DNA of 64,000 nt from the NCBI GenBank assembly GCA_001179505.1, contig CDMY01000338.1:49572-113571 (forward strand), given 5' to 3'. Below the pieces are notes generated by a model. That model saw only the letters and a program-made list of their open reading frames with translations, did no database searches and had not been told where the DNA came from. A program made the position numbers and the translations under genes. Within the stretch, counting starts at the first letter, position 1, and each line of letters begins with the position of its first letter. Origin of the DNA: Vitrella brassicaformis CCMP3155. Lineage: Eukaryota > Protista > Chromerida. Shown here in pieces: positions 43,199-64,000 of the stretch.

Positions 43199-43498
43199 NN
43201 NNNNNNNNNNNNNNNNNNNNNNNNNNNNNNNNNNNNNNNNNNNNNNNNNNNNNNNNNNNNNNNNNNNNNNNNNNNNNNNNNNNNNNNNNNNNNNNNNNNN
43301 NNNNNNNNNNNNNNNNNNNNNNNNNNNNNNNNNNNNNNNNNNNNNNNNNNNNNNNNNNNNNNNNNNNNNNNNNNNNNNNNNNNNNNNNNNNNNNNNNNNN
43401 NNNNNNNNNNNNNNNNNNNNNNNNNNNNNNNNNNNNNNNNNNNNNNNNNNNNNNNNNNNNNNNNNNNNNNNNNNNNNNNNNNNNNNNNNNNNNNNNNN
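43199..43498. other. Assembly gap (300 N)
   Basis: Run of N. Confidence 1.
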
Positions 43499-44709: not shown

Positions 44710-45009
44710 NNNNNNNNNNNNNNNNNNNNNNNNNNNNNNNNNNNNNNNNNNNNNNNNNNNNNNNNNNNNNNNNNNNNNNNNNNNNNNNNNNNNNNNNNNN
44801 NNNNNNNNNNNNNNNNNNNNNNNNNNNNNNNNNNNNNNNNNNNNNNNNNNNNNNNNNNNNNNNNNNNNNNNNNNNNNNNNNNNNNNNNNNNNNNNNNNNN
44901 NNNNNNNNNNNNNNNNNNNNNNNNNNNNNNNNNNNNNNNNNNNNNNNNNNNNNNNNNNNNNNNNNNNNNNNNNNNNNNNNNNNNNNNNNNNNNNNNNNNN
45001 NNNNNNNNN
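44710..45009. other. Assembly gap (300 N)
   Basis: Run of N. Confidence 1.
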
Positions 45010-53864: not shown

Positions 53865-54129
53865 ATGCGATGCTATTCCAACGCACAAACAGCGGCCGGG
53901 AATTCCTCGCCAACTCCCCGTGAAACCACAGACGAGAGAGAGAACTGGAAAAGGCAAGCGAAATCAGGGCGAAAGGGGCGAGTGGTGGATACACACGGGC
54001 CTGTGTCGCTTCATGTGTGTGACCTGACCTGCAGATCTCCCCATCCCCTCTCTCCCAACCAAGGAAGGCAGGCATCATTCATCACCCAAGGCAGGCAGGA
54101 AGGCGTTGAAGGTGAGTGAGTGAGCATCG

Positions 54130-55498
54130 ATGGCCGAGCTTGCGGTAGAGAAGTACGTGGCCGAGTGCATCGGCACCTTCTTCCTCGTACTCACGATCGG
54201 GTGCTGCGTCATCAACGGTAAGTAAGGAGGCTTTGGGGGGGTATCATAACAGCAGGGCTCACACACCGACAGCAATCTCTGTGTGATGGCGCATTTGTTC
54301 GTGTAGGTGTGCCGTTCGCTCCCCTTGCCATCGGGGGCATCCTGATGGTCATGATCTTCGCTATGGGCTCGGTGTCAGGTGAGCGAATGACGGCACACAC
54401 AGACACGCAGGCAAAGATCTATCCACCTACACGGCCCATCCATCCATCCATCCATCCATCGTCTGTTCTCCCCTTGGTTGCCACACTATCTATGCAGGCG
54501 CTCACTTCAACCCCGCTGTGACGACTTCTGTTCTAATCAGTGGCCGACAGAAGATCACGCCCCAAGACGCCTGCCTCTACATGCTGGCACAGCTGGTACA
54601 CACACATCTCGCATCTGGCAGACATACAACGCACAAGGCCTTGAGAGTGGGTGTAGGTCGGTGCTTGCTTGATGCCTGTGTTGTGTGTGCAGGTGGGCGG
54701 TCTGCTGGCGGGTCTGGTTTACTGGTACCTCACCGGCCTGACCTTCGCACTTGCGCCCGGCAAGACACACAACTGGCTTGATGCGTCAGTGGCTGAAATG
54801 TAAGACAGACAGACAGACAGACATGCAGAATGTGGGGAGGGAGGCAGTGGGGGAGTTGCCGTGACCTGTGCTGTGCTGGGTCCATCCATGTACGTGTCAG
54901 CCATTCCTTGGTTCGTTCAGGTTCTTCACGTGCGCCCTGTGCTTCGTCGTGCTCAACACTGCCACTACCAAGGAGGTGCGCTCACGCGACGGATGGATGG
55001 GGGACGTTTTTGCTTGATCTGTGCGTGTGTGTCTTTGGCTGGGTGGGTGGGGGTGGCTGGCTGCAGGACTCGCCAAATCACTACTTCGGCCTCGCAATCG
55101 GGTTCACCGTCATGGCCTCGGTGACTGACCGCAGTTGAAGAATGAATTGTGCTTCTCACTTATGTGTATCAATCATGTGCGTCGCGTCACACGTGTGATG
55201 CAGGCCTTTGCGATCGGGAGCATATCAGGTGCGTCGCTGAATCCGGCGGTGTCGTTCGGCAGCCTGATGGTGCACGGCATCCGCACGGGCGGTGGATGGG
55301 TCTACTTCCCTCTCTACCTGCTCGTCCCATTCGTCGGGAGCGCACTCGCCGCTGGTGCGGACGGACACGACGCATCAACACACTACTGCTAACACGCCGA
55401 CCGCACTTTCCTTTGTGTGTGCAGGTTTGTTTTACCTGGTGCGGCCGGCCGAGTATGGGTGGAAGCGAGCAGAGGGCGATTACAGGCAGATCCGATAG
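54130..55498 (+). CDS. AQP: Aquaporin (MIP family), 8 exons
   Basis: KYVAECIGTFFLV, SGAHFNPAVT, AEMFFTCAL, YFGLAIGFTV, SGASLNPAVSFG (two NPA motifs); ends DYRQIR*. Confidence 0.95.
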
Positions 55499-56436
55499 AC
55501 ATCTGAGATAGATAGATAACCAGACACAGAGAGAGAGAGAGAGATGTAGACAGACAGGCATAGGCGTTAGTACTAGATGATGATGATGACAAGCCCAGCC
55601 TCATCGATGCATCGATCGCACTCGCTCGTCAGCTTCCTTCCGAGAGGAAGCGTTTCTTCCCGTCTGTCTGTCTGCCATCTATGCCAGGCGGTTTTCGCAG
55701 AGAGAGGCTGGCACAGCGACAGAGAGGCAGACAGAGCGGCCTGCCTATTTTTAGTCAGTCGATGGAGCACTCGGACGGACAAGGGACAGCGGGTGTGGTG
55801 TGGCCTACGTGTGTGTGTGGGCACGGACGTTTTCTACAGTCAGCCAGGCACACAAGAAGGAACCTGATCGACCCTGTGTGTGTGGTGTGGTGTATTGTGG
55901 TCAGTGAGAGGGAGGGTGAAACGGCGTAAGTATGTTTGCCATCGAAATCGGAACGCTGTTGTGTAGCCGAGCCGCTTCAAGTTGATCGCGGTCAGTCTGT
56001 CCACTCCTTTCCATGCATCACTTGTCGAAACCAGCGGCAAGTACTTAAGCGTCATTTGTTTTGCATCACTAGTACTTGTCGATCACGCGTGAGTTTCATC
56101 ATGATGTACGTAGGTAGCTAGCCAGGCGCACACACACATATACACACAAGACGAAAAGGCCAAGCACTCACAGCGGTGCTTGTGCCACAGACAGACAGAC
56201 AGACAGACAGAGAGGCAGACACAGACACAGAGACAGAGAGACAGAGAGAGGCACACACACACGGCTAGAGAGGCACACACCCACGACTCACTCATGCACG
56301 GCAGGCATGACATACATACAGCTTCTCGAACGGCACATACACATGATGCACAGAGCCGACAGACGTATGGCAAACAAGCACGCACACACGCACACACGAG
56401 TGAGTTGAGTGCTTTCCACGTACGGCTCACTCATGA

Positions 56437-56736
56437 NNNNNNNNNNNNNNNNNNNNNNNNNNNNNNNNNNNNNNNNNNNNNNNNNNNNNNNNNNNNNNNN
56501 NNNNNNNNNNNNNNNNNNNNNNNNNNNNNNNNNNNNNNNNNNNNNNNNNNNNNNNNNNNNNNNNNNNNNNNNNNNNNNNNNNNNNNNNNNNNNNNNNNNN
56601 NNNNNNNNNNNNNNNNNNNNNNNNNNNNNNNNNNNNNNNNNNNNNNNNNNNNNNNNNNNNNNNNNNNNNNNNNNNNNNNNNNNNNNNNNNNNNNNNNNNN
56701 NNNNNNNNNNNNNNNNNNNNNNNNNNNNNNNNNNNN
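56437..56736. other. Assembly gap (300 N) hiding the body of one peptide-precursor copy
   Basis: Immediately right of the gap, the minus strand reads ATG ATG AAG GTC C (start at 56749), the same start as the other copies. Confidence 0.9.
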
Positions 56737-58193
56737 GGACCTTCATCATCCTTGTCAGGGGCAGATGGATGGATGGATGGATGGATGGACGCGAGCAAGC
56801 AGACCACCAGCAGACCGAGAGGCAGGCACGAGTCAGTGACAGACAACAAAGAGCGGGCTGTGGGCAGCACTCAGGGATGCTTAAGCTGTCTGCAGAGTGG
56901 TCGGCAAAGAGATGCTCGCAGTCGAGTGGGGATGAGGAGGATGGATGGATGGATGGAGGACAGCTCAGGCTGGCAACAGTGGGTGGATGCAAAAGACACA
57001 AGGCCACCAAGACAGTCGCACGCACTGCAGAGAGAGAAGGGAGGGAGAGAAAAGAGAGGAGTCACACCTCTCGCTCGCTGCCAATCAGCCTGCGATGTAC
57101 CTCATCGTCCACCATGGCCGGCCGACTGTGAGTCACTGAGGGCAGGGCTGGTCTTCGAGCGGTGCGACCCGTCTGCACGCACCAACGAACCAACAGGCAC
57201 CACGCCAACAGAGAAAGAAGAACAAATGCATGCGCTGCATTCGTCATTGCATAGATCTGCTTCATTGGTGTGTTTCCCGATCACCTGACGACTTTCCCGA
57301 GCTCTCCAAGCGCGCAGACTTAGGACATTTCGTGAAACCGTTCTCTCACTTCTTTAAAGGGACAGAAAAAAAGGAAACAGAAAGACACCCGACGTGTACG
57401 ATCGGATCAAATATGTATCCACCTCTTTAGACATACATATGTATTGTCATCAGACCTGATGGATGGAAACGCACTGGGTGGATGGCTTCTGCAGGTACTT
57501 ATGTTCTGGTTGTGTTGCGGTGCATGGGGCTGCTTTCGTCAGGGGCGGCGTCCTTTTTTGACCCTGTGCCGCTTGCTTCGGCGACTCCCCCTCCCTCCGC
57601 TCTCTGATCCTGGCCAAGCAGGCCTCAGTGGCCGTCGAGGAGCTCAGACGTCTGTCTGCATGCGCGGCACCGGGCCCTCTCACTGCCGACTTGTTGCCGG
57701 CCATTTGCAGTGGACATAGCATCAGATCTGTTGTACCACCGCCGCCTGTTTAAAGTGGCCGGGCAGTGTCTATAATCTGCATTAATTGTCGTGTGGTTCT
57801 GCAGACGGATATCTATCTATTGGCATGAACGGGCCAATCAATTGGCAACACATCGATTTATCTAAGCGTCATTTATTTTGCATCACTTGTCGGTCACGCG
57901 TGAGTCTCATCATTCATTCATTCGACGTACGTGTCTTTCCACACACACCAACCAAATCGACACACTCTGTAGGTAGCTAGCCAGGCGCACACACACATAT
58001 ACACACAAGACGAAAAGGCCAAGCACTCACAGCGGTGCTTGTGCCACAGACAGACAGACAGAGAGGCAGACACAGAAACAGAGACAGAGAGACAGAGAGA
58101 CAGAGAGAGCACACACACACGGCTAGAGAGGCACACACTCACGACTCACTCATGCACGGCAGGCATGACATACATACAGCTTCTCGAACGGCA

Positions 58194-58493
58194 NNNNNNN
58201 NNNNNNNNNNNNNNNNNNNNNNNNNNNNNNNNNNNNNNNNNNNNNNNNNNNNNNNNNNNNNNNNNNNNNNNNNNNNNNNNNNNNNNNNNNNNNNNNNNNN
58301 NNNNNNNNNNNNNNNNNNNNNNNNNNNNNNNNNNNNNNNNNNNNNNNNNNNNNNNNNNNNNNNNNNNNNNNNNNNNNNNNNNNNNNNNNNNNNNNNNNNN
58401 NNNNNNNNNNNNNNNNNNNNNNNNNNNNNNNNNNNNNNNNNNNNNNNNNNNNNNNNNNNNNNNNNNNNNNNNNNNNNNNNNNNNNNNNNNNNN
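58194..58493. other. Assembly gap (300 N)
   Basis: Run of N inside a repeat unit. Confidence 1.
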
Positions 58494-58587
58494 CGACATG
58501 CAGACAGACAGACAGACAGACAGATCTGCCCGGCCCAGCCCACCCCAGCCCTGTCTGTCCCCGGCCCCTCTGTCTGTCCCTCCTTTG

Positions 58588-59392
58588 TCAATAACAGGGA
58601 CCGCCGCAAAGCGAAAAGGCATCATTTTGAAGCTTGGTGGCCTTCTTGTGCATATGATTCGCGAGATTGTGGGCCCCAAGACTCCCAGCAACATTGGCAA
58701 TGCCCCGTTTGAAATTTCCACCGAACTGTTTGAGCTTTCCAAGGAAGTTACCAAATTGAAGTCCCCTCCGCTCGGCGGCGGCGGCGTCGGGTCCAGATGA
58801 CGCGCTGATACGCTCCTTGCGGAGGCTGTCGACGGTCATGCGGCTGCGGTCGTCGGTCCGGATGGCCGTGAGGGCCGACTCAAGATCCACAGGCGCCCCG
58901 CCTATCAGCTCGCGGAACTCAGAAGCTGTCTTGACCTCTGGCTCAACAACTGCAGTCAGTCGTTAACACACAACAGACATCCACTCACAGGTTGTGTGTG
59001 CGTCAGGAGGAACAGGCAGCACACATACCTGGTGCCTGAGCTGTCGACGACTGCTCCGTCTTGTCGTCTGCTGTTTCCACCGCCGTACGCACAACAGCCT
59101 CAGGCAGGACACCTGCACACACATAATATACACACACAGGAAGTATTGCCAGCCCGAGTCCGAGAGTGCAGACGTGTGGATGACTGACTGACTGACTGAC
59201 TGAGTGAATGGGTGTGTGCGTACCTTCAGTTGTGATTTCGTTGGCACCATCAGCTGTCCCGCCTCGCAATCGCCTCGCCAGCACAGAGGGTGCGGCACCA
59301 GCAGCAGCAGCAGCAACAGCAGGCGGCTGTGGATCAGCCGACGCCAGAGTGATGCCGACAACACACAGCAGCACGCTAAGGACCTTCATCAT
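58588..59392 (-). CDS. Secreted prepro-peptide, copy A (204 aa; exons 59392-59224, 59112-59029, 58949-58588); candidate antimicrobial/lytic peptide precursor
   Basis: All three exons join in phase 1 at canonical GT/AG, total 615 nt. Signal MMKVLSVLLCVVGITLASA, RRLR, acidic spacer, ERR, then GLQFGNFLGKLKQFGGNFKRGIANVAGSLGAHNLANHMHKKATKLQNDAFSLCGGPCY*. Function is inferred. Confidence 0.8.
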
Positions 59393-59759
59393 CCTTGTCA
59401 GGGGCAGTTGGATCGATGGATATACGCGAGCAAGCAGACCAGCAGCAGACCGAGAGGCAGGCACGAGTGAGTGACAGACGACAAAGAGCGGCCTGAGCAG
59501 CACTCAGTGATGCTAAGCTGTCTGCTGAGTGGTCGGCAGAGAGATGCTTGCAGTCGAGTGGGGATGAGGAGGATGGATGGAGGGCAGCTCAGGCTGGCAA
59601 CAGTGGGTCGTTGCAAAAGACACAAGGCCACCAAGACAGTCGCACTGCAGAGAGAGAAGGGAGGGAGAGAAAAGAGAGGCGTTTTTGAGCGTTTGAGCGT
59701 TAAAGAGAGGAGTCGCACCTCTCGCTCGCTGCGGATCAGCCTGCGATGTACCTCATCGT

Positions 59760-60400
59760 CCAACATGGCCGGCCGACTGTGACTCACTGAGGGCAGGGCT
59801 GGTCTTCGAGCGGTGCGCCCCGTCTGCACGCCCAATTGCAGCAGCTGGTCCAGGCTGTGCTCGATGCCCGCCGCTTCAGCCTTCAGCTGCAGGATGACAC
59901 ACACACGAAGACCATGCCAAACAAACTCATGCCAGCCTCCCAACTCGCAGCCGCTCACTTCGACAAGATGCCGTTTACCATATCATGCTCTAACTCGACA
60001 GAGGCAGGGGTGCATTCTTCCATGCATTCGTCGTCCCGCGCAGTAAACACCGCCCGCTCGTTATGGACAGCGACTATTTGAGCTGACGTTCATCGGCTCT
60101 GACACTCCCTCTCGTCCCTCTCCACGGCATCGTACGACTGTCGTACGGCGTCAGCCTGAGGGCTCTTGCTGTCGCGGCGGTGTAGCGGCAGCTCATCCAG
60201 TCTCAGCGAGCAGGGTCAGCCCCTCCCATACTTATGTACTGGTTGTGTTGCGGTGCATGGGGCTGCTCTCGTCAGGGGCGGCGTCCTCTTTTTGACCCTG
60301 TGCCGCTTGTTTCGGCGACTCCCCCTCCCTCCTCTCTCTGATCCTGGCCAAGCAGGCCTCAGTGGCCGTCGAGGAGCTCAGACGTCTGTCTGCGCGGCAG
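59760..60400 (-). pseudogene. Degenerate coding relic carried in the repeat unit upstream of the peptide gene (also at ~62290-62930)
   Basis: Exon-like stretches LRLDELPLHRRDSKSPQADAVRQSYDAVERDERECQSR*TSAQ...HDMVNGILSK| and LKAEAAGIEHSLDQLLQLG have splice-like boundaries but in-frame stops. Confidence 0.3.
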
Positions 60401-61461
60401 CGCAGCGGGCGCTCTCACTGCCGACCCTGGCTTGTCGCTTATGTAGCCACTTGTTGCCGGCCATTTGCAGTGGACATAGCATCAGATCTGTTCTACCAAC
60501 CACCGCCGCATTAATTGTCGTGTGGTTCTGCAGACGGATATCTATTGGTATGAATGGACCAATCAATTGACAACACATCGATCGATCTAAGCGTCATTAT
60601 TTTGCATCACTTGTCCACCACTCATGAGTCTCATCATTCATTCATTCATTCATTGACACACTCTGTACGTAGCTAGGCGCACACACACATATGCACACAA
60701 GACGAAAAGGCCAAGCACTCAAAGCGATGCTTGTGCCACAGACAGACAGACAGACAGAGAGGCAGACACAGAGAGGGAGAGAGGTACACAGACATGACTC
60801 ACTCCTGCACGGCAGGCATGACATACATACAGCTTCTCGAACAGCGCATACACATGATGTACAGAGCCGACAGACGTAGGACAAAGAAGCACGCACACAC
60901 ACGTGAGTGACTGACTGAGTGAGTTAGTGCTCCCTCCCACGTACGGCTCACTCATGACTCACACGACCGACCATGCATCGCTAGCGTACACAAACAACGC
61001 CTCGATTAGCGCCCACACCACCCCACACCCACGTCGCCACGCCCGCCTGCCCGCCCGCAAGCATCGACTAATCGAGTGTCCTCGATCGATCTGGCTCCTG
61101 TCCTGTCTGCCTCACGGCTGATGGACAAAAACGCAGGCGATGGAATGTGTGTGTGTGTGTGTGTGTGTGTGCTCAGTGAGTGCCGCACACACAGTCCACA
61201 CACTCAATAATCTACACACTAGGGTAAGTACTTACACAAACAATTACTCACCCACCTACACATGCACACATCTGACTGACTGACTGACTGACTGTGCTGC
61301 CTGGCTGGCTGGCTGGCTGGCTGAGTGATTCATATCAACACGGCACTCACTCACGGCCAGCGCAGCATGCAGCGCACGCACGACAGGCAGACAGACAGAC
61401 AGATCTGCCCAGCCCAGCCCAGCCCTGTCTGTCCCCGGCCCCTCTGTCTGTTCCTCCTTCG

Positions 61462-61925
61462 TCAATAACTGCAGTATTGATTGTAGCCGCAATACTTGTC
61501 GGCCTTCCTGTGAAAATGCTCCGCAAGATTGTAGGCCCCAACAGCGTTTGCAAAATTGGCAACGCCCCGTTTGAAATTTCCGGCGACCTTTCTAAAGAAT
61601 TCACCAAGAAGTCTCCTCCGATCGGCGGCGGCGTCGGGTCCAGATGACGCGCTGGTAGTCTTGACCTCTGGCTCAACAACTGCAGTCAGTCGTTAACACA
61701 CAACGGACACTGACTGACTGACAGACTGAGTGAGTGAGTGGGTGTGTGCGTACCTTCAGTTGTGATTTCGTCGGCACCATCAGCTGTCCCGCCTCGCAAT
61801 CGTCTCGCCAGCACAGAGGGTGCGGCACCAGCAGCAGCAGCAGCAGCAACAGCAGGCGGCTGTGGATCAGCCGACGCCAGAGTGATGCCGACAGCACACA
61901 GCAGCACGCTAAGGACCTTCATCAT
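61462..61925 (-). CDS. Secreted prepro-peptide, copy B (129 aa; exons 61925-61754, 61679-61462); candidate antimicrobial/lytic peptide precursor
   Basis: Phase-1 GT/AG intron, total 390 nt, intact frame. Signal, RRLR, acidic spacer, DRRR, then LLGEFFRKVAGNFKRGVANFANAVGAYNLAEHFHRKADKYCGYNQYCSY*. Exon 2 is absent from the ORF track in this frame. Confidence 0.8.
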
Positions 61926-64000
61926 CCTTGTCAGGGGCAGTTGGATCGATGGATATACGCGAGCAAGCAGACCAGCAGCAGACCGAGAGGCAGGCACGAG
62001 TGAGTGACAGACGACAAAGAGCGGCCTGAGCAGCACTCAGTGATGCTAAGCTGTCTGCTGAGTGGTCGGCGGAGAGATGCTTGCAGTCGAGTGGGGATGA
62101 GGCGGATGGATGGAGGGCAGCTCAGGCTGGCAACAGTGGGTCGTTGCAAAAGACACAAGGCCACCAAGACAGTCGCACTGCAGAGAGAGAAGGGAGGGAG
62201 AGAAAAGAGAGGCGTTTTTGAGCGTTTGAGCGTTAAAGAGAGGAGTCGCACCTCTCGCTCGCTGCGGATCAGCCTGCGATGTACCTCATCGTCCAACATG
62301 GCCGGCCGACTGTGACTCACTGAGGGCAGGGCTGGTCTTCGAGCGGTGCGCCCCGTCTGCACGCCCAATTGCAGCAGCTGGTCCAGGCTGTGCTCGATGC
62401 CCGCCGCTTCAGCCTTCAGCTGCAGGATGACACACACACGAAGACCATGACAAACAAACTCATGCCAGCCTCCCAACTCGCAGCCGCTCACTTCGACAAG
62501 ATGCCGTTTACCATATCATGCTCTAACTCGACAGAGGCAGGGAGTGCATTCTTCCATGCATTCGTCGTCCCGCGCAGTAAACACCGCCCGCTCGTTATGG
62601 ACAGCGACTATTTGAGCTGACGTTCATCGGCTCTGACACTCCCTCTCGTCCCCCTCCACGGCATCGTACGACTGTCGTACGGCGTCAGCCTGAGGGCTCT
62701 TGCTGTCGCGGCGGTGTAGCGGCAGCTCATCCAGTCTCAGCGAGCAGGGTCAGCCCCTCCCATACTTATGTACTGGTTGTGTTGCGGTGCATGGGGCTGC
62801 TCTCGTCAGGGGCGGCGTCCTCTTTTTGACCCTGTGCCGCTTGTTTCGGCGACTCCCCCTCCCTCCTCTCTCTGATCCTGGCCAAGCAGGCCTCAGTGGC
62901 CGTCGAGGAGCTCAGACGTCTGTCTGCGCGGCAGCGCAGCGGGCGCTCTCACTGCCGACCCTGGCTTGCCGCTTATGTAGCCACTTGTTGCCGGCCATTT
63001 GCAGTGGACATAGCATGAGATCTGTTCTACCAACCACCGCCGCATTATTATCGTGTGGTTCTGCAGACGGATATCTATTGGTATGAATGGACCAATCAAT
63101 TGACAACACATCGATCGATCTAAGCGTCATTATTTTGCATCACTTGTCGACCACTCATGAGTCTCATCATTCATTCATTCATTGACACACTCTGTACGTA
63201 GCTAGGCGCACACACACATATGCACACAAGACGAAAAGGCCAAGCCCAAGCACTCAAAGCGATGCTTGTGCCACAGACAGACAGACAGACAGACAGACAG
63301 AGAGGCAGACACAGAGAGGGAGAGAGGTACACACACATGACTCACTCCTGCACGGCAGGCATGACATACATACAGCTTCTCGAACAGCGCATACACATGA
63401 TGTACAGAGCCGACAGACGTAGGACAAAGAAGCACGCACACACACGTGAGTGACTGACTGAGTGAGTTAGTGCTCCCTCCCACGTACGGCTCACTCATGA
63501 CTCACACGACCGACCATGCATCGCTAGCGTACACAAACAACGCCTCGCTTAGCGCCCACACCACCCCACACCCACGTCGCCACGCACGCCCGCCCGCCCG
63601 CCAGCATCGACTAATCGAGTGTCCTCGATCGATCTGGCTCCTGTCCTGTCTGCCTCACGGCTGATGGACAAAAACGCAGGCGATGGAATGTGTGTGTGTG
63701 TGTGTGTGTGCAGTGAGTGCCGCACACAGTCCACACACTCAATAATCTACACACTAAGGTAAGTACTTACACAAACAATTACTCACCCACCTACACATGC
63801 ACACATCTGACTGACTGACTGTGCTGCCTGGCTGGCTGGCTGGCTGAGTGATTCATATCAACACGGCACTCACTCACGGCCAGCGCAGCATGCAGCGCAC
63901 GCACGCACGCACGACAGACAGACAGACAGACAGACAGACAGATCTGCCCAGCCCAGCCCAGCCCTGTCTGTCCCCGGCCCCTCTGTCTGTTCCTCCTTCG

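Follow-up and report, generated by a model that had tools for sequence, protein, structure and literature searches.

A fast-diversifying family of small predicted secreted prepro-proteins in tandem 2.5-kb units of Vitrella brassicaformis

In the precursors of amphibian skin peptides (preprodermaseptin/FSAP: dermaseptins, brevinins, esculentins), a signal peptide is followed by an acidic propiece and, after a basic site, by a cationic amphipathic peptide at the C-terminus. Their prepro part is highly conserved and the mature part hypervariable within a multigene family, and some members carry a C-terminal disulfide loop. Genes of this layout are present on the minus strand of a 64,000-nt stretch of Vitrella brassicaformis CCMP3155, a photosynthetic chromerid alga closely related to the malaria parasites (contig CDMY01000338.1, positions 49,572 to 113,571, position 64000 of the stretch being the contig end), which we call the window. 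They belong to a Vitrella-specific, expressed, fast-diversifying multigene family of small predicted secreted prepro-proteins encoded in tandem 2.5-kb units. The first-pass annotation of this DNA had described them as amphibian-type precursors. The layout holds, from signal peptide and acidic propiece to basic site and cationic amphipathic peptide, but the Vitrella proteins are not homologous in sequence to the frog families and have no match to Pfam PF03032. The Vitrella precursors, which come from an alveolate alga, also have an extra invariant ARRLRGG, RR(L) in place of KR, and longer peptides (49–63 amino acid residues). The amphibian Rana box is C-x5-C, whereas the Vitrella peptides, copy B excepted, have C-x3-C followed by Tyr.

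Three other groups of precursors invite comparison. The cathelicidins, such as human LL-37, combine a conserved proregion with a variable C-terminal cationic helix. The B peptide starts with L-L-G-E-F-F-R-K, close to the start of LL-37, a likeness of eight residues that is either coincidence or convergence. However, Pfam gives no match to the cathelin-like proregion, which has four conserved Cys, and the Vitrella propiece contains none and comes out disordered in the model. The conotoxin superfamilies of cone snails share with the Vitrella family a near-identical signal and pro part, a divergence of the mature part in which nonsynonymous exceeds synonymous divergence (dN > dS), and tandem or multi-copy paralogues, but conotoxins are Cys-rich, knotted and aimed at ion channels, while most of the Vitrella peptides are linear helices that have one Cys pair. 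TEXEL/PEXEL substrates and the RxLR effectors of oomycetes have a signal peptide and, about 20 residues on, R-R-L (R-x-L-R), and eight of the ten Vitrella members have a second RRL. In contrast to those proteins, the Vitrella precursors come from a free-living or loosely coral-associated organism, their payload is a short cationic helix with no effector domain, and the motif is a putative cleavage site. Judged from the sequences, the likeness to known peptide precursors is convergence and not membership, every homology test having failed. A convergent family of defence or allelopathic peptides is in our opinion the best reading of the sequences, with a probability of about one half.

Genes A and B and their transcripts

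Splicing of the minus strand gives two complete genes, A of 204 and B of 129 amino acid residues (Table 1), as the first-pass annotation had read them. The two translations are identical to the database proteins P0001 and P0005 of V. brassicaformis CCMP3155, in agreement with the chromerid-type origin supposed beforehand, and both genes are uninterrupted by N runs. Each starts with a signal peptide (MMKVLSVLLC...ASA) that has an A-x-A cleavage motif and is followed by an Ala-rich stretch. RRLR comes next, then an acidic spacer and either ERR (A) or DRRR (B), and both tails contain two Cys and end in Tyr. Every element that had been listed from the letters, the charge and the His residues of the tails included, is present in spliced A and B, and the core pattern proposed as common to the two tails fits both.

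RNA runs X1–X4 and DNA run X6 were compared with the window via contigs, depth being contig or word depth. An aquaporin (Pfam MIP) gene at 54033–55960 (+), whose six GT..AG introns were all confirmed by RNA contigs, was used as the reference for expression and single-copy depth. Every splice junction of A and B, for which confirmation by RNA had been suggested, occurs in transcript contigs. The joint of A intron 2 (58949/59029) is present in all four RNA runs, as is the joint of A exon 1 with exon 2, with A-specific letters in X1, X3 and X4. The B intron joint (61679/61754) was found in two runs, X1 and X3, and B-type joints occur elsewhere as loose ends. For every unit the joint of an intron in the 5′ untranslated region (5′UTR) was found in RNA contigs (59645/59752 in A; 57024/57101 in copy 3), and the 5′UTR of copy 3 is transcribed, with RNA contigs at 56803–57017. 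Contigs of gene A had depths of 64–71, 752–839 and 311–326 in X1, X3 and X4, respectively, compared with 45, 532 and 270 for aquaporin, while intergenic DNA at 57243–57833 had zero depth in these three runs versus about 100-fold depth in the DNA run. The spliced joints, a gene A depth at least equal to that of aquaporin and the silent intergenic DNA indicate that the transcripts are real and not rare.

Alternative splicing of a 39-residue module was considered and rejected. The apparent joint 58807/58928, with its non-canonical ends and three replaced letters, is what B-type transcripts look like when placed on A, and the module itself is an indel in the genome that distinguishes the copies.

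Family members and divergence of the mature peptide

A second locus on contig CDMY01000342.1 contains two copies, P0003 (164 residues) and P0002 (209 residues), in the same 2.5-kb unit but with flanks unrelated to the window, which brings the complete paralogues to at least four at two loci. A further copy, from a diverged Vitrella-like relative, is located at positions 1671–2410 of a metagenome contig (L002; ENA ERZ893782, k147_1865869). Its noncoding DNA is 65–79% identical to the window and its mature peptide ends in C-G-W-K-C. Both ends of this contig match the same part of the unit, here about 2.7 kb long, so that the metagenome copy appears to be tandem as well. P0004 and P0008 were discarded: they are not real proteins but arise where the gene caller read through intron 1 of the metagenome relative.

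A second subfamily was reached by a profile search of 1.84 billion representative proteins, followed by a search with the match P0007. It comprises P0007, P0009 (an MMETSP transcript), P0010, P0011 and P0012, with genes on four other Vitrella contigs. These proteins have in common with the window genes the signal peptide, A-P-S-A-V-A-R-R-L-R-G-G, the acidic spacer and T-E-R-R-L-G, and they end in unrelated cationic tails rich in Lys, Trp, Tyr and Gly, some with G-Y-G-R-G-Y repeats. Glycine/tyrosine-rich antimicrobial peptides of the C. elegans NLP-29/31 type are known from invertebrates. Compared by description, they resemble the second subfamily only, in the G-Y-G-R-G-Y repeats and the basic charge.

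The same profile search found no homologue outside Vitrella-like organisms, apart from one low-complexity match of 1569 residues, which bears out the lineage-specific character that the first-pass annotation had assigned to the genes. A scan of JGI metagenomes gave 600 pattern matches and no true relative among them. No Pfam domain was detected at E up to 1 in eight family members or at E up to 10 in single exons, the matches (DUF5972, PEX6_vert_N and others) being sub-threshold noise. A phmmer search of all PDB chains with the B peptide, at E up to 10, returned no antimicrobial peptide and one chance match, a lactate dehydrogenase. In UniRef the family proteins carry the automatic name 'RxLR effector protein', which presumably derives from the signal peptide followed by RRLR. 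A full-text literature search for Vitrella together with 'antimicrobial peptide' returned only papers that, by title or abstract, are on other subjects. One of them discusses peptides of the coral host (PMC5864212). The Vitrella genome paper never uses the word 'antimicrobial', and the literature search turned up no family of gene-encoded, linear cationic peptides on a conserved prepro scaffold in chromerids or dinoflagellates.

In a DNA alignment of four genes, mean identity was 93–98% in the 400 nt upstream, exon 1, both introns, exon 2, the propiece and the 3′UTR. In the mature-peptide codons it was 72% (range 65–78%), with indels in addition. Identity falls immediately downstream of the D-R-R-R codons and recovers at the conserved codons of the C-terminal Cys loop, just 5′ of the stop. 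Nei-Gojobori dN and dS were computed on five sequences (10 pairs) with codon bootstraps. For the mature part, dN was 0.32–0.81 (mean 0.555) and dS 0.13–0.51 (mean 0.324), giving dN/dS of 1.24–2.8 in 10 of 10 pairs, with dN-dS above zero in 99.4% of the codon bootstraps. For the prepro part, mean dN was 0.044 versus a mean dS of 0.089. Prepro dS was 0.017–0.079 among the CCMP3155 copies and 0.12–0.19 against the metagenome relative, and the lower values within CCMP3155 indicate that concerted evolution homogenises the scaffold while the mature part escapes and gathers amino acid changes.

The same figures could be read as a neutral by-product, in which gene conversion homogenises old paralogues except for one escaping stretch and the peptide has no selected function. 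Such a reading would account for dS being 3–8 times higher in the mature part than elsewhere, and concerted evolution, as the prepro dS indicates, is what it calls for. We consider it highly improbable, however, because all complete copies have open frames and keep the charge, the amphipathicity, the Cys loop and about 13 invariant positions, because in every pair the variable block runs from the cleavage site to within a few codons of the stop, and because dN exceeds dS.

Predicted peptides, processing and function

The predicted mature peptides are 49–63 residues long, with a net charge of +4 to +7, 5–10 Gly and 1–4 His, and usually close with a small loop, C-x3-C or C-x5-C. Among 18-residue windows the N-terminal one is best, with a hydrophobic moment of 0.47–0.70 that is reached by 0.4–4.9% of shuffled sequences (B, 0.63 and 0.9%), and a second, weaker amphipathic stretch lies downstream. 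The amphipathic helix for which a helical-wheel check had been proposed is therefore supported, its moment exceeding that of most shuffles, and with their net positive charge the peptides show both marks of the linear cationic α-helical antimicrobial class. AlphaFold2 modelled the mature part as one long helix (residues 2–55) at a predicted local distance difference test score (pLDDT) of 66. The full precursor reached a pLDDT of 43, with the propiece disordered and no fold to search with. The propiece has a net charge of -2 to -6. A plastid bipartite leader was considered and rejected, since Asp is the first residue past the signal cleavage site and the propiece charge is negative. In a language-model comparison the A peptide fell near dermaseptin, frog antimicrobial peptide, bombinin and cecropin clusters with scores of 0.5–0.6, which are leads only. 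The neighbours of a second-subfamily tail were exclusively glycine-rich, cuticle-like or uninformative clusters.

These last neighbours, together with the G-Y-G-R-G-Y type repeats at the ends of the second subfamily, would suit structural or adhesive wall components, the cationic Gly/Tyr/Lys-rich tails being cross-linked in the laminated cell wall or the sporangium. We regard this as quite improbable for the family, because the window subfamily has few Tyr and no repeats, and because an amphipathic helix combined with dN > dS is seldom seen in structural proteins.

A dibasic pair (KR, KK or RK) is conserved mid-peptide before G-I/V-A-N, and P0002 contains three G-K-x-K-R repeats, so that a kexin-like enzyme would cut the peptide further. 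Both features would suit a signalling role, as pheromone, gamete-recognition factor or prohormone-like peptide: the precursor would be cut at RR and at internal KR/KK into several short peptides that act on Vitrella's own receptors, for example in zoospore formation or fusion. Ciliate pheromone precursors and prohormones combine a conserved prepro part with a variable mature region, much as here, and reproductive proteins likewise show dN > dS. But several diverged copies are co-expressed in ordinary cultures, the high net charge and the amphipathicity are kept while the sequence changes, and the second-subfamily tails are so dense in KK and KR that a dibasic convertase would shred them. On balance a signalling role seems unlikely.

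The defence-type reading is strengthened by the transcription of the genes, by the spread of the family over several loci, by a variability that is confined to the mature peptide with dN > dS, and by the joining of the same prepro part to unrelated cationic tails. In the mechanism that we propose, the signal peptide would bring the precursor into the secretory pathway, and the largely disordered, net-acidic propiece with its invariant ARRLRGG would hold the cargo inactive or sort it. Cleavage at the conserved [D/E]-R-R-(R)-L site would then free a C-terminal peptide of 49–63 residues that is cationic (+4 to +7), Gly/His-rich and predicted to form an amphipathic helix. The freed peptides would most likely act on the membranes of other microbes, in defence or allelopathy, and arms-race selection may diversify the peptide while the delivery scaffold is kept constant. 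Secretion, the cleavage positions, the protease, the membrane activity and the target organisms are all points that we infer.

Several points weigh against this reading. The alignment behind the dN/dS values is rich in indels, the pairs are non-independent and the synonymous sites number about 30–37. The rise of dS in the mature part means that gene conversion homogenising the rest, or a local mutational effect, contributes to the pattern. The antimicrobial-like language-model neighbours score in the chance range, the second-subfamily tails resemble glycine/tyrosine-rich structural proteins as much as antimicrobial peptides, and 49–63 residues is long for linear helical antimicrobial peptides. 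The internal KR/KK pairs could be cut by a dibasic convertase, so the real products may differ from the predicted ones. If the peptides are active, the strategy of frogs, cathelicidins and conotoxins, a constant delivery cassette with a fast-evolving warhead, would have been invented independently in a coral-reef alga that is sister to Apicomplexa, and the family would be a new source of marine peptide scaffolds.

ARRLRGG is invariant in 10 of 10 members and is the most conserved element of the whole superfamily. The second RRL, near the C-terminal part and directly in front of the cationic payload, is found in eight of the ten; A has RRGL and the metagenome copy RRSL. The Toxoplasma protease ASP5 has the consensus RRLxx and cuts at both N- and C-terminal substrate positions (PMC4764566). 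The family has RRLxx in predicted secretory-pathway proteins, as TEXEL (ASP5) substrates do. The PEXEL motif of plasmepsin V, RxLxE/Q/D, does not occur, since the fifth position is Gly (R-R-L-R-G) in all members. Oomycete RxLR effectors are recognised by a signal peptide and RxLR within about 30–60 residues of the N-terminus, and in Vitrella RRLR stands about 20 residues after the predicted A-S-A site. The dEER motif and WY/LWY domains of those effectors are lacking: there is no E-E-R, only ERR or DRRR 34–100 residues downstream, and no Pfam domain.

As the automatic UniRef name suggests, the proteins might be host-directed effectors of the RxLR/PEXEL/TEXEL type, in which RRLR would mark the protein to be cleaved and carried into cells of a coral or another host. 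Besides the signal peptide and an R-x-L-R about 20 residues past the predicted cleavage site, followed by acidic sequence, the agreement of RRL with the ASP5 consensus (PMC4764566) and a fast C-terminal evolution typical of effectors speak for such a role. We hold it to be very doubtful nonetheless. The payload is a single helix, dEER and WY or any other Pfam domains are lacking, and Gly stands at the fifth PEXEL position. According to survey data cited in PMC5864212, Vitrella is perhaps not obligately symbiotic with corals; expression of the genes is seen in culture-type RNA runs, and the full-text literature search found no paper joining Vitrella and RxLR.

For the defence-type peptides, the motif raises a question of processing. 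A general dibasic convertase would destroy the second-subfamily tails, which are packed with KK, KR and RK. Both this density and the unvarying R-R-L point to a protease specific for the motif. R-x-x-L, as cut by a site-1-type protease, and R-x-x-R, a minimal furin site, fit as well. As a tentative suggestion from the motifs, both RRL sites might be cut by a chromerid orthologue of ASP5/plasmepsin V; literature searches for such an orthologue in Vitrella gave no clear statement. If so, the PEXEL/TEXEL processing step, by which apicomplexan parasites export effectors, would predate parasitism and would have matured secreted defence peptides in a free-living ancestor, and a motif-specific protease would explain how Lys/Arg-dense payloads escape dibasic convertases. 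Vitrella offers a non-parasitic, tractable system for asking what the RRL (TEXEL-like) motif did before parasitism.

The tandem array and its assembly

The features of the array are listed in Table 1. The start sites (ATGATGAAGGTCC) follow one another at 61925, 59392 and 56749 on the minus strand. The two partial copies that had been described in addition to A and B exist as traces: copy 3 is reduced to 13 coding nt, and copy 4 to 3′ flank.

Table 1. Coordinates of the array, its genes and related features. Positions are those of the window unless another contig is named.
Feature	Position	Strand	Remarks
Tandem array, units of ~2.53–2.64 kb	56040–64000	(-)	ATG-to-ATG spacing 2533 and 2643 nt; ended by the contig end
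Gene A (P0001), 204 aa, 3 exons	58588–59392	(-)	Exons 59392–59224, 59112–59029, 58949–58588; introns of 111 and 79 nt, GT..AG
RRLR codons of A, residues 40–43	59264–59275	(-)	Gene A splice model, alignment
Predicted mature peptide of A, 58 aa counted after ERR	58591–58764	(-)	Net +6, 3 His, ends C-G-G-P-C-Y
Gene B (P0005), 129 aa, 2 exons	61462–61925	(-)	Exon 1 61925–61754; exon 2 61679–61462 including stop
Coding intron of gene B, 74 nt, GT..AG	61753–61680	(-)	Spliced-gene model
RRLR codons of B, residues 41–44	61794–61805	(-)	Within the invariant ARRLRGG; alignments
Predicted mature peptide of B, 49 aa	61465–61611	(-)	Net +4, 2 His, C-x5-C loop then S-Y
5′UTR intron of gene B, 74 nt	62178–62251	(-)	Joint in RNA contigs
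Copy 3 start (ATGATGAAGGTCC)	56737–56749	(-)	13 nt coding, then directly the assembly gap
Copy 4, 3′ flank only	63900–64000	(-)	Coding part beyond the contig end (64000)
Assembly gap, 300 N	56437–56736		Entire body of copy 3 missing here, judged by anchor distances in complete units
Assembly gap, intergenic part of unit	58194–58493		Begins 94 nt 3′ of the gene A stop codon
Second subfamily, one locus	L003:8001–8560 (CDMY01000748.1)		Searches from the profile match

Anchor distances in complete units put the DNA missing from the gap at 56437–56736 at no less than 0.95 kb and that from the gap at 58194–58493 at about 525 nt, versus 300 N written in each. With the contig ending inside the array and more DNA missing than either N run shows, the tandem repeat is collapsed or broken in the assembly. 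In the DNA run, word depth was 11–13 on the single-copy flank and 95–124 on the array (about 8–10 times higher). This suggests roughly 8–10 unit equivalents in the genome versus six assembled, a rough figure, as contig depth is a poor measure. The longest period of Tandem Repeats Finder is 500, which makes it blind to the 2.5-kb unit. Microsatellites, (GTCT)n, (CAGT)n, (CATC)n and (CA)n, occur throughout each unit (56180–56300, 58040–58130, 60740–60790, 61290–61330, 63270–63340 and elsewhere) and are probably the cause of the assembly gaps of the array. Two more assembly gaps lie outside it, at 43199–43498 and 44710–45009.

Unit 3 has a different insert upstream of the 5′UTR (57243–57520), which shows array depth in the DNA run and is silent in the RNA runs; the units are hence not all alike in structure or transcription. 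After a CAG acceptor each unit also has an exon-like fragment (59836–59886 and 62369–62419, minus strand) reading L-K-A-E-A-A-G-I-E-H-S-L-D-Q-L-L-Q. RNA contigs of up to 1078 nt extend the fragment at 59836/62369 into sequence absent from the window and from the second locus (L001), and it looks like a piece of another gene that was captured at the duplication breakpoint and is now part of a long spliced 5′UTR.

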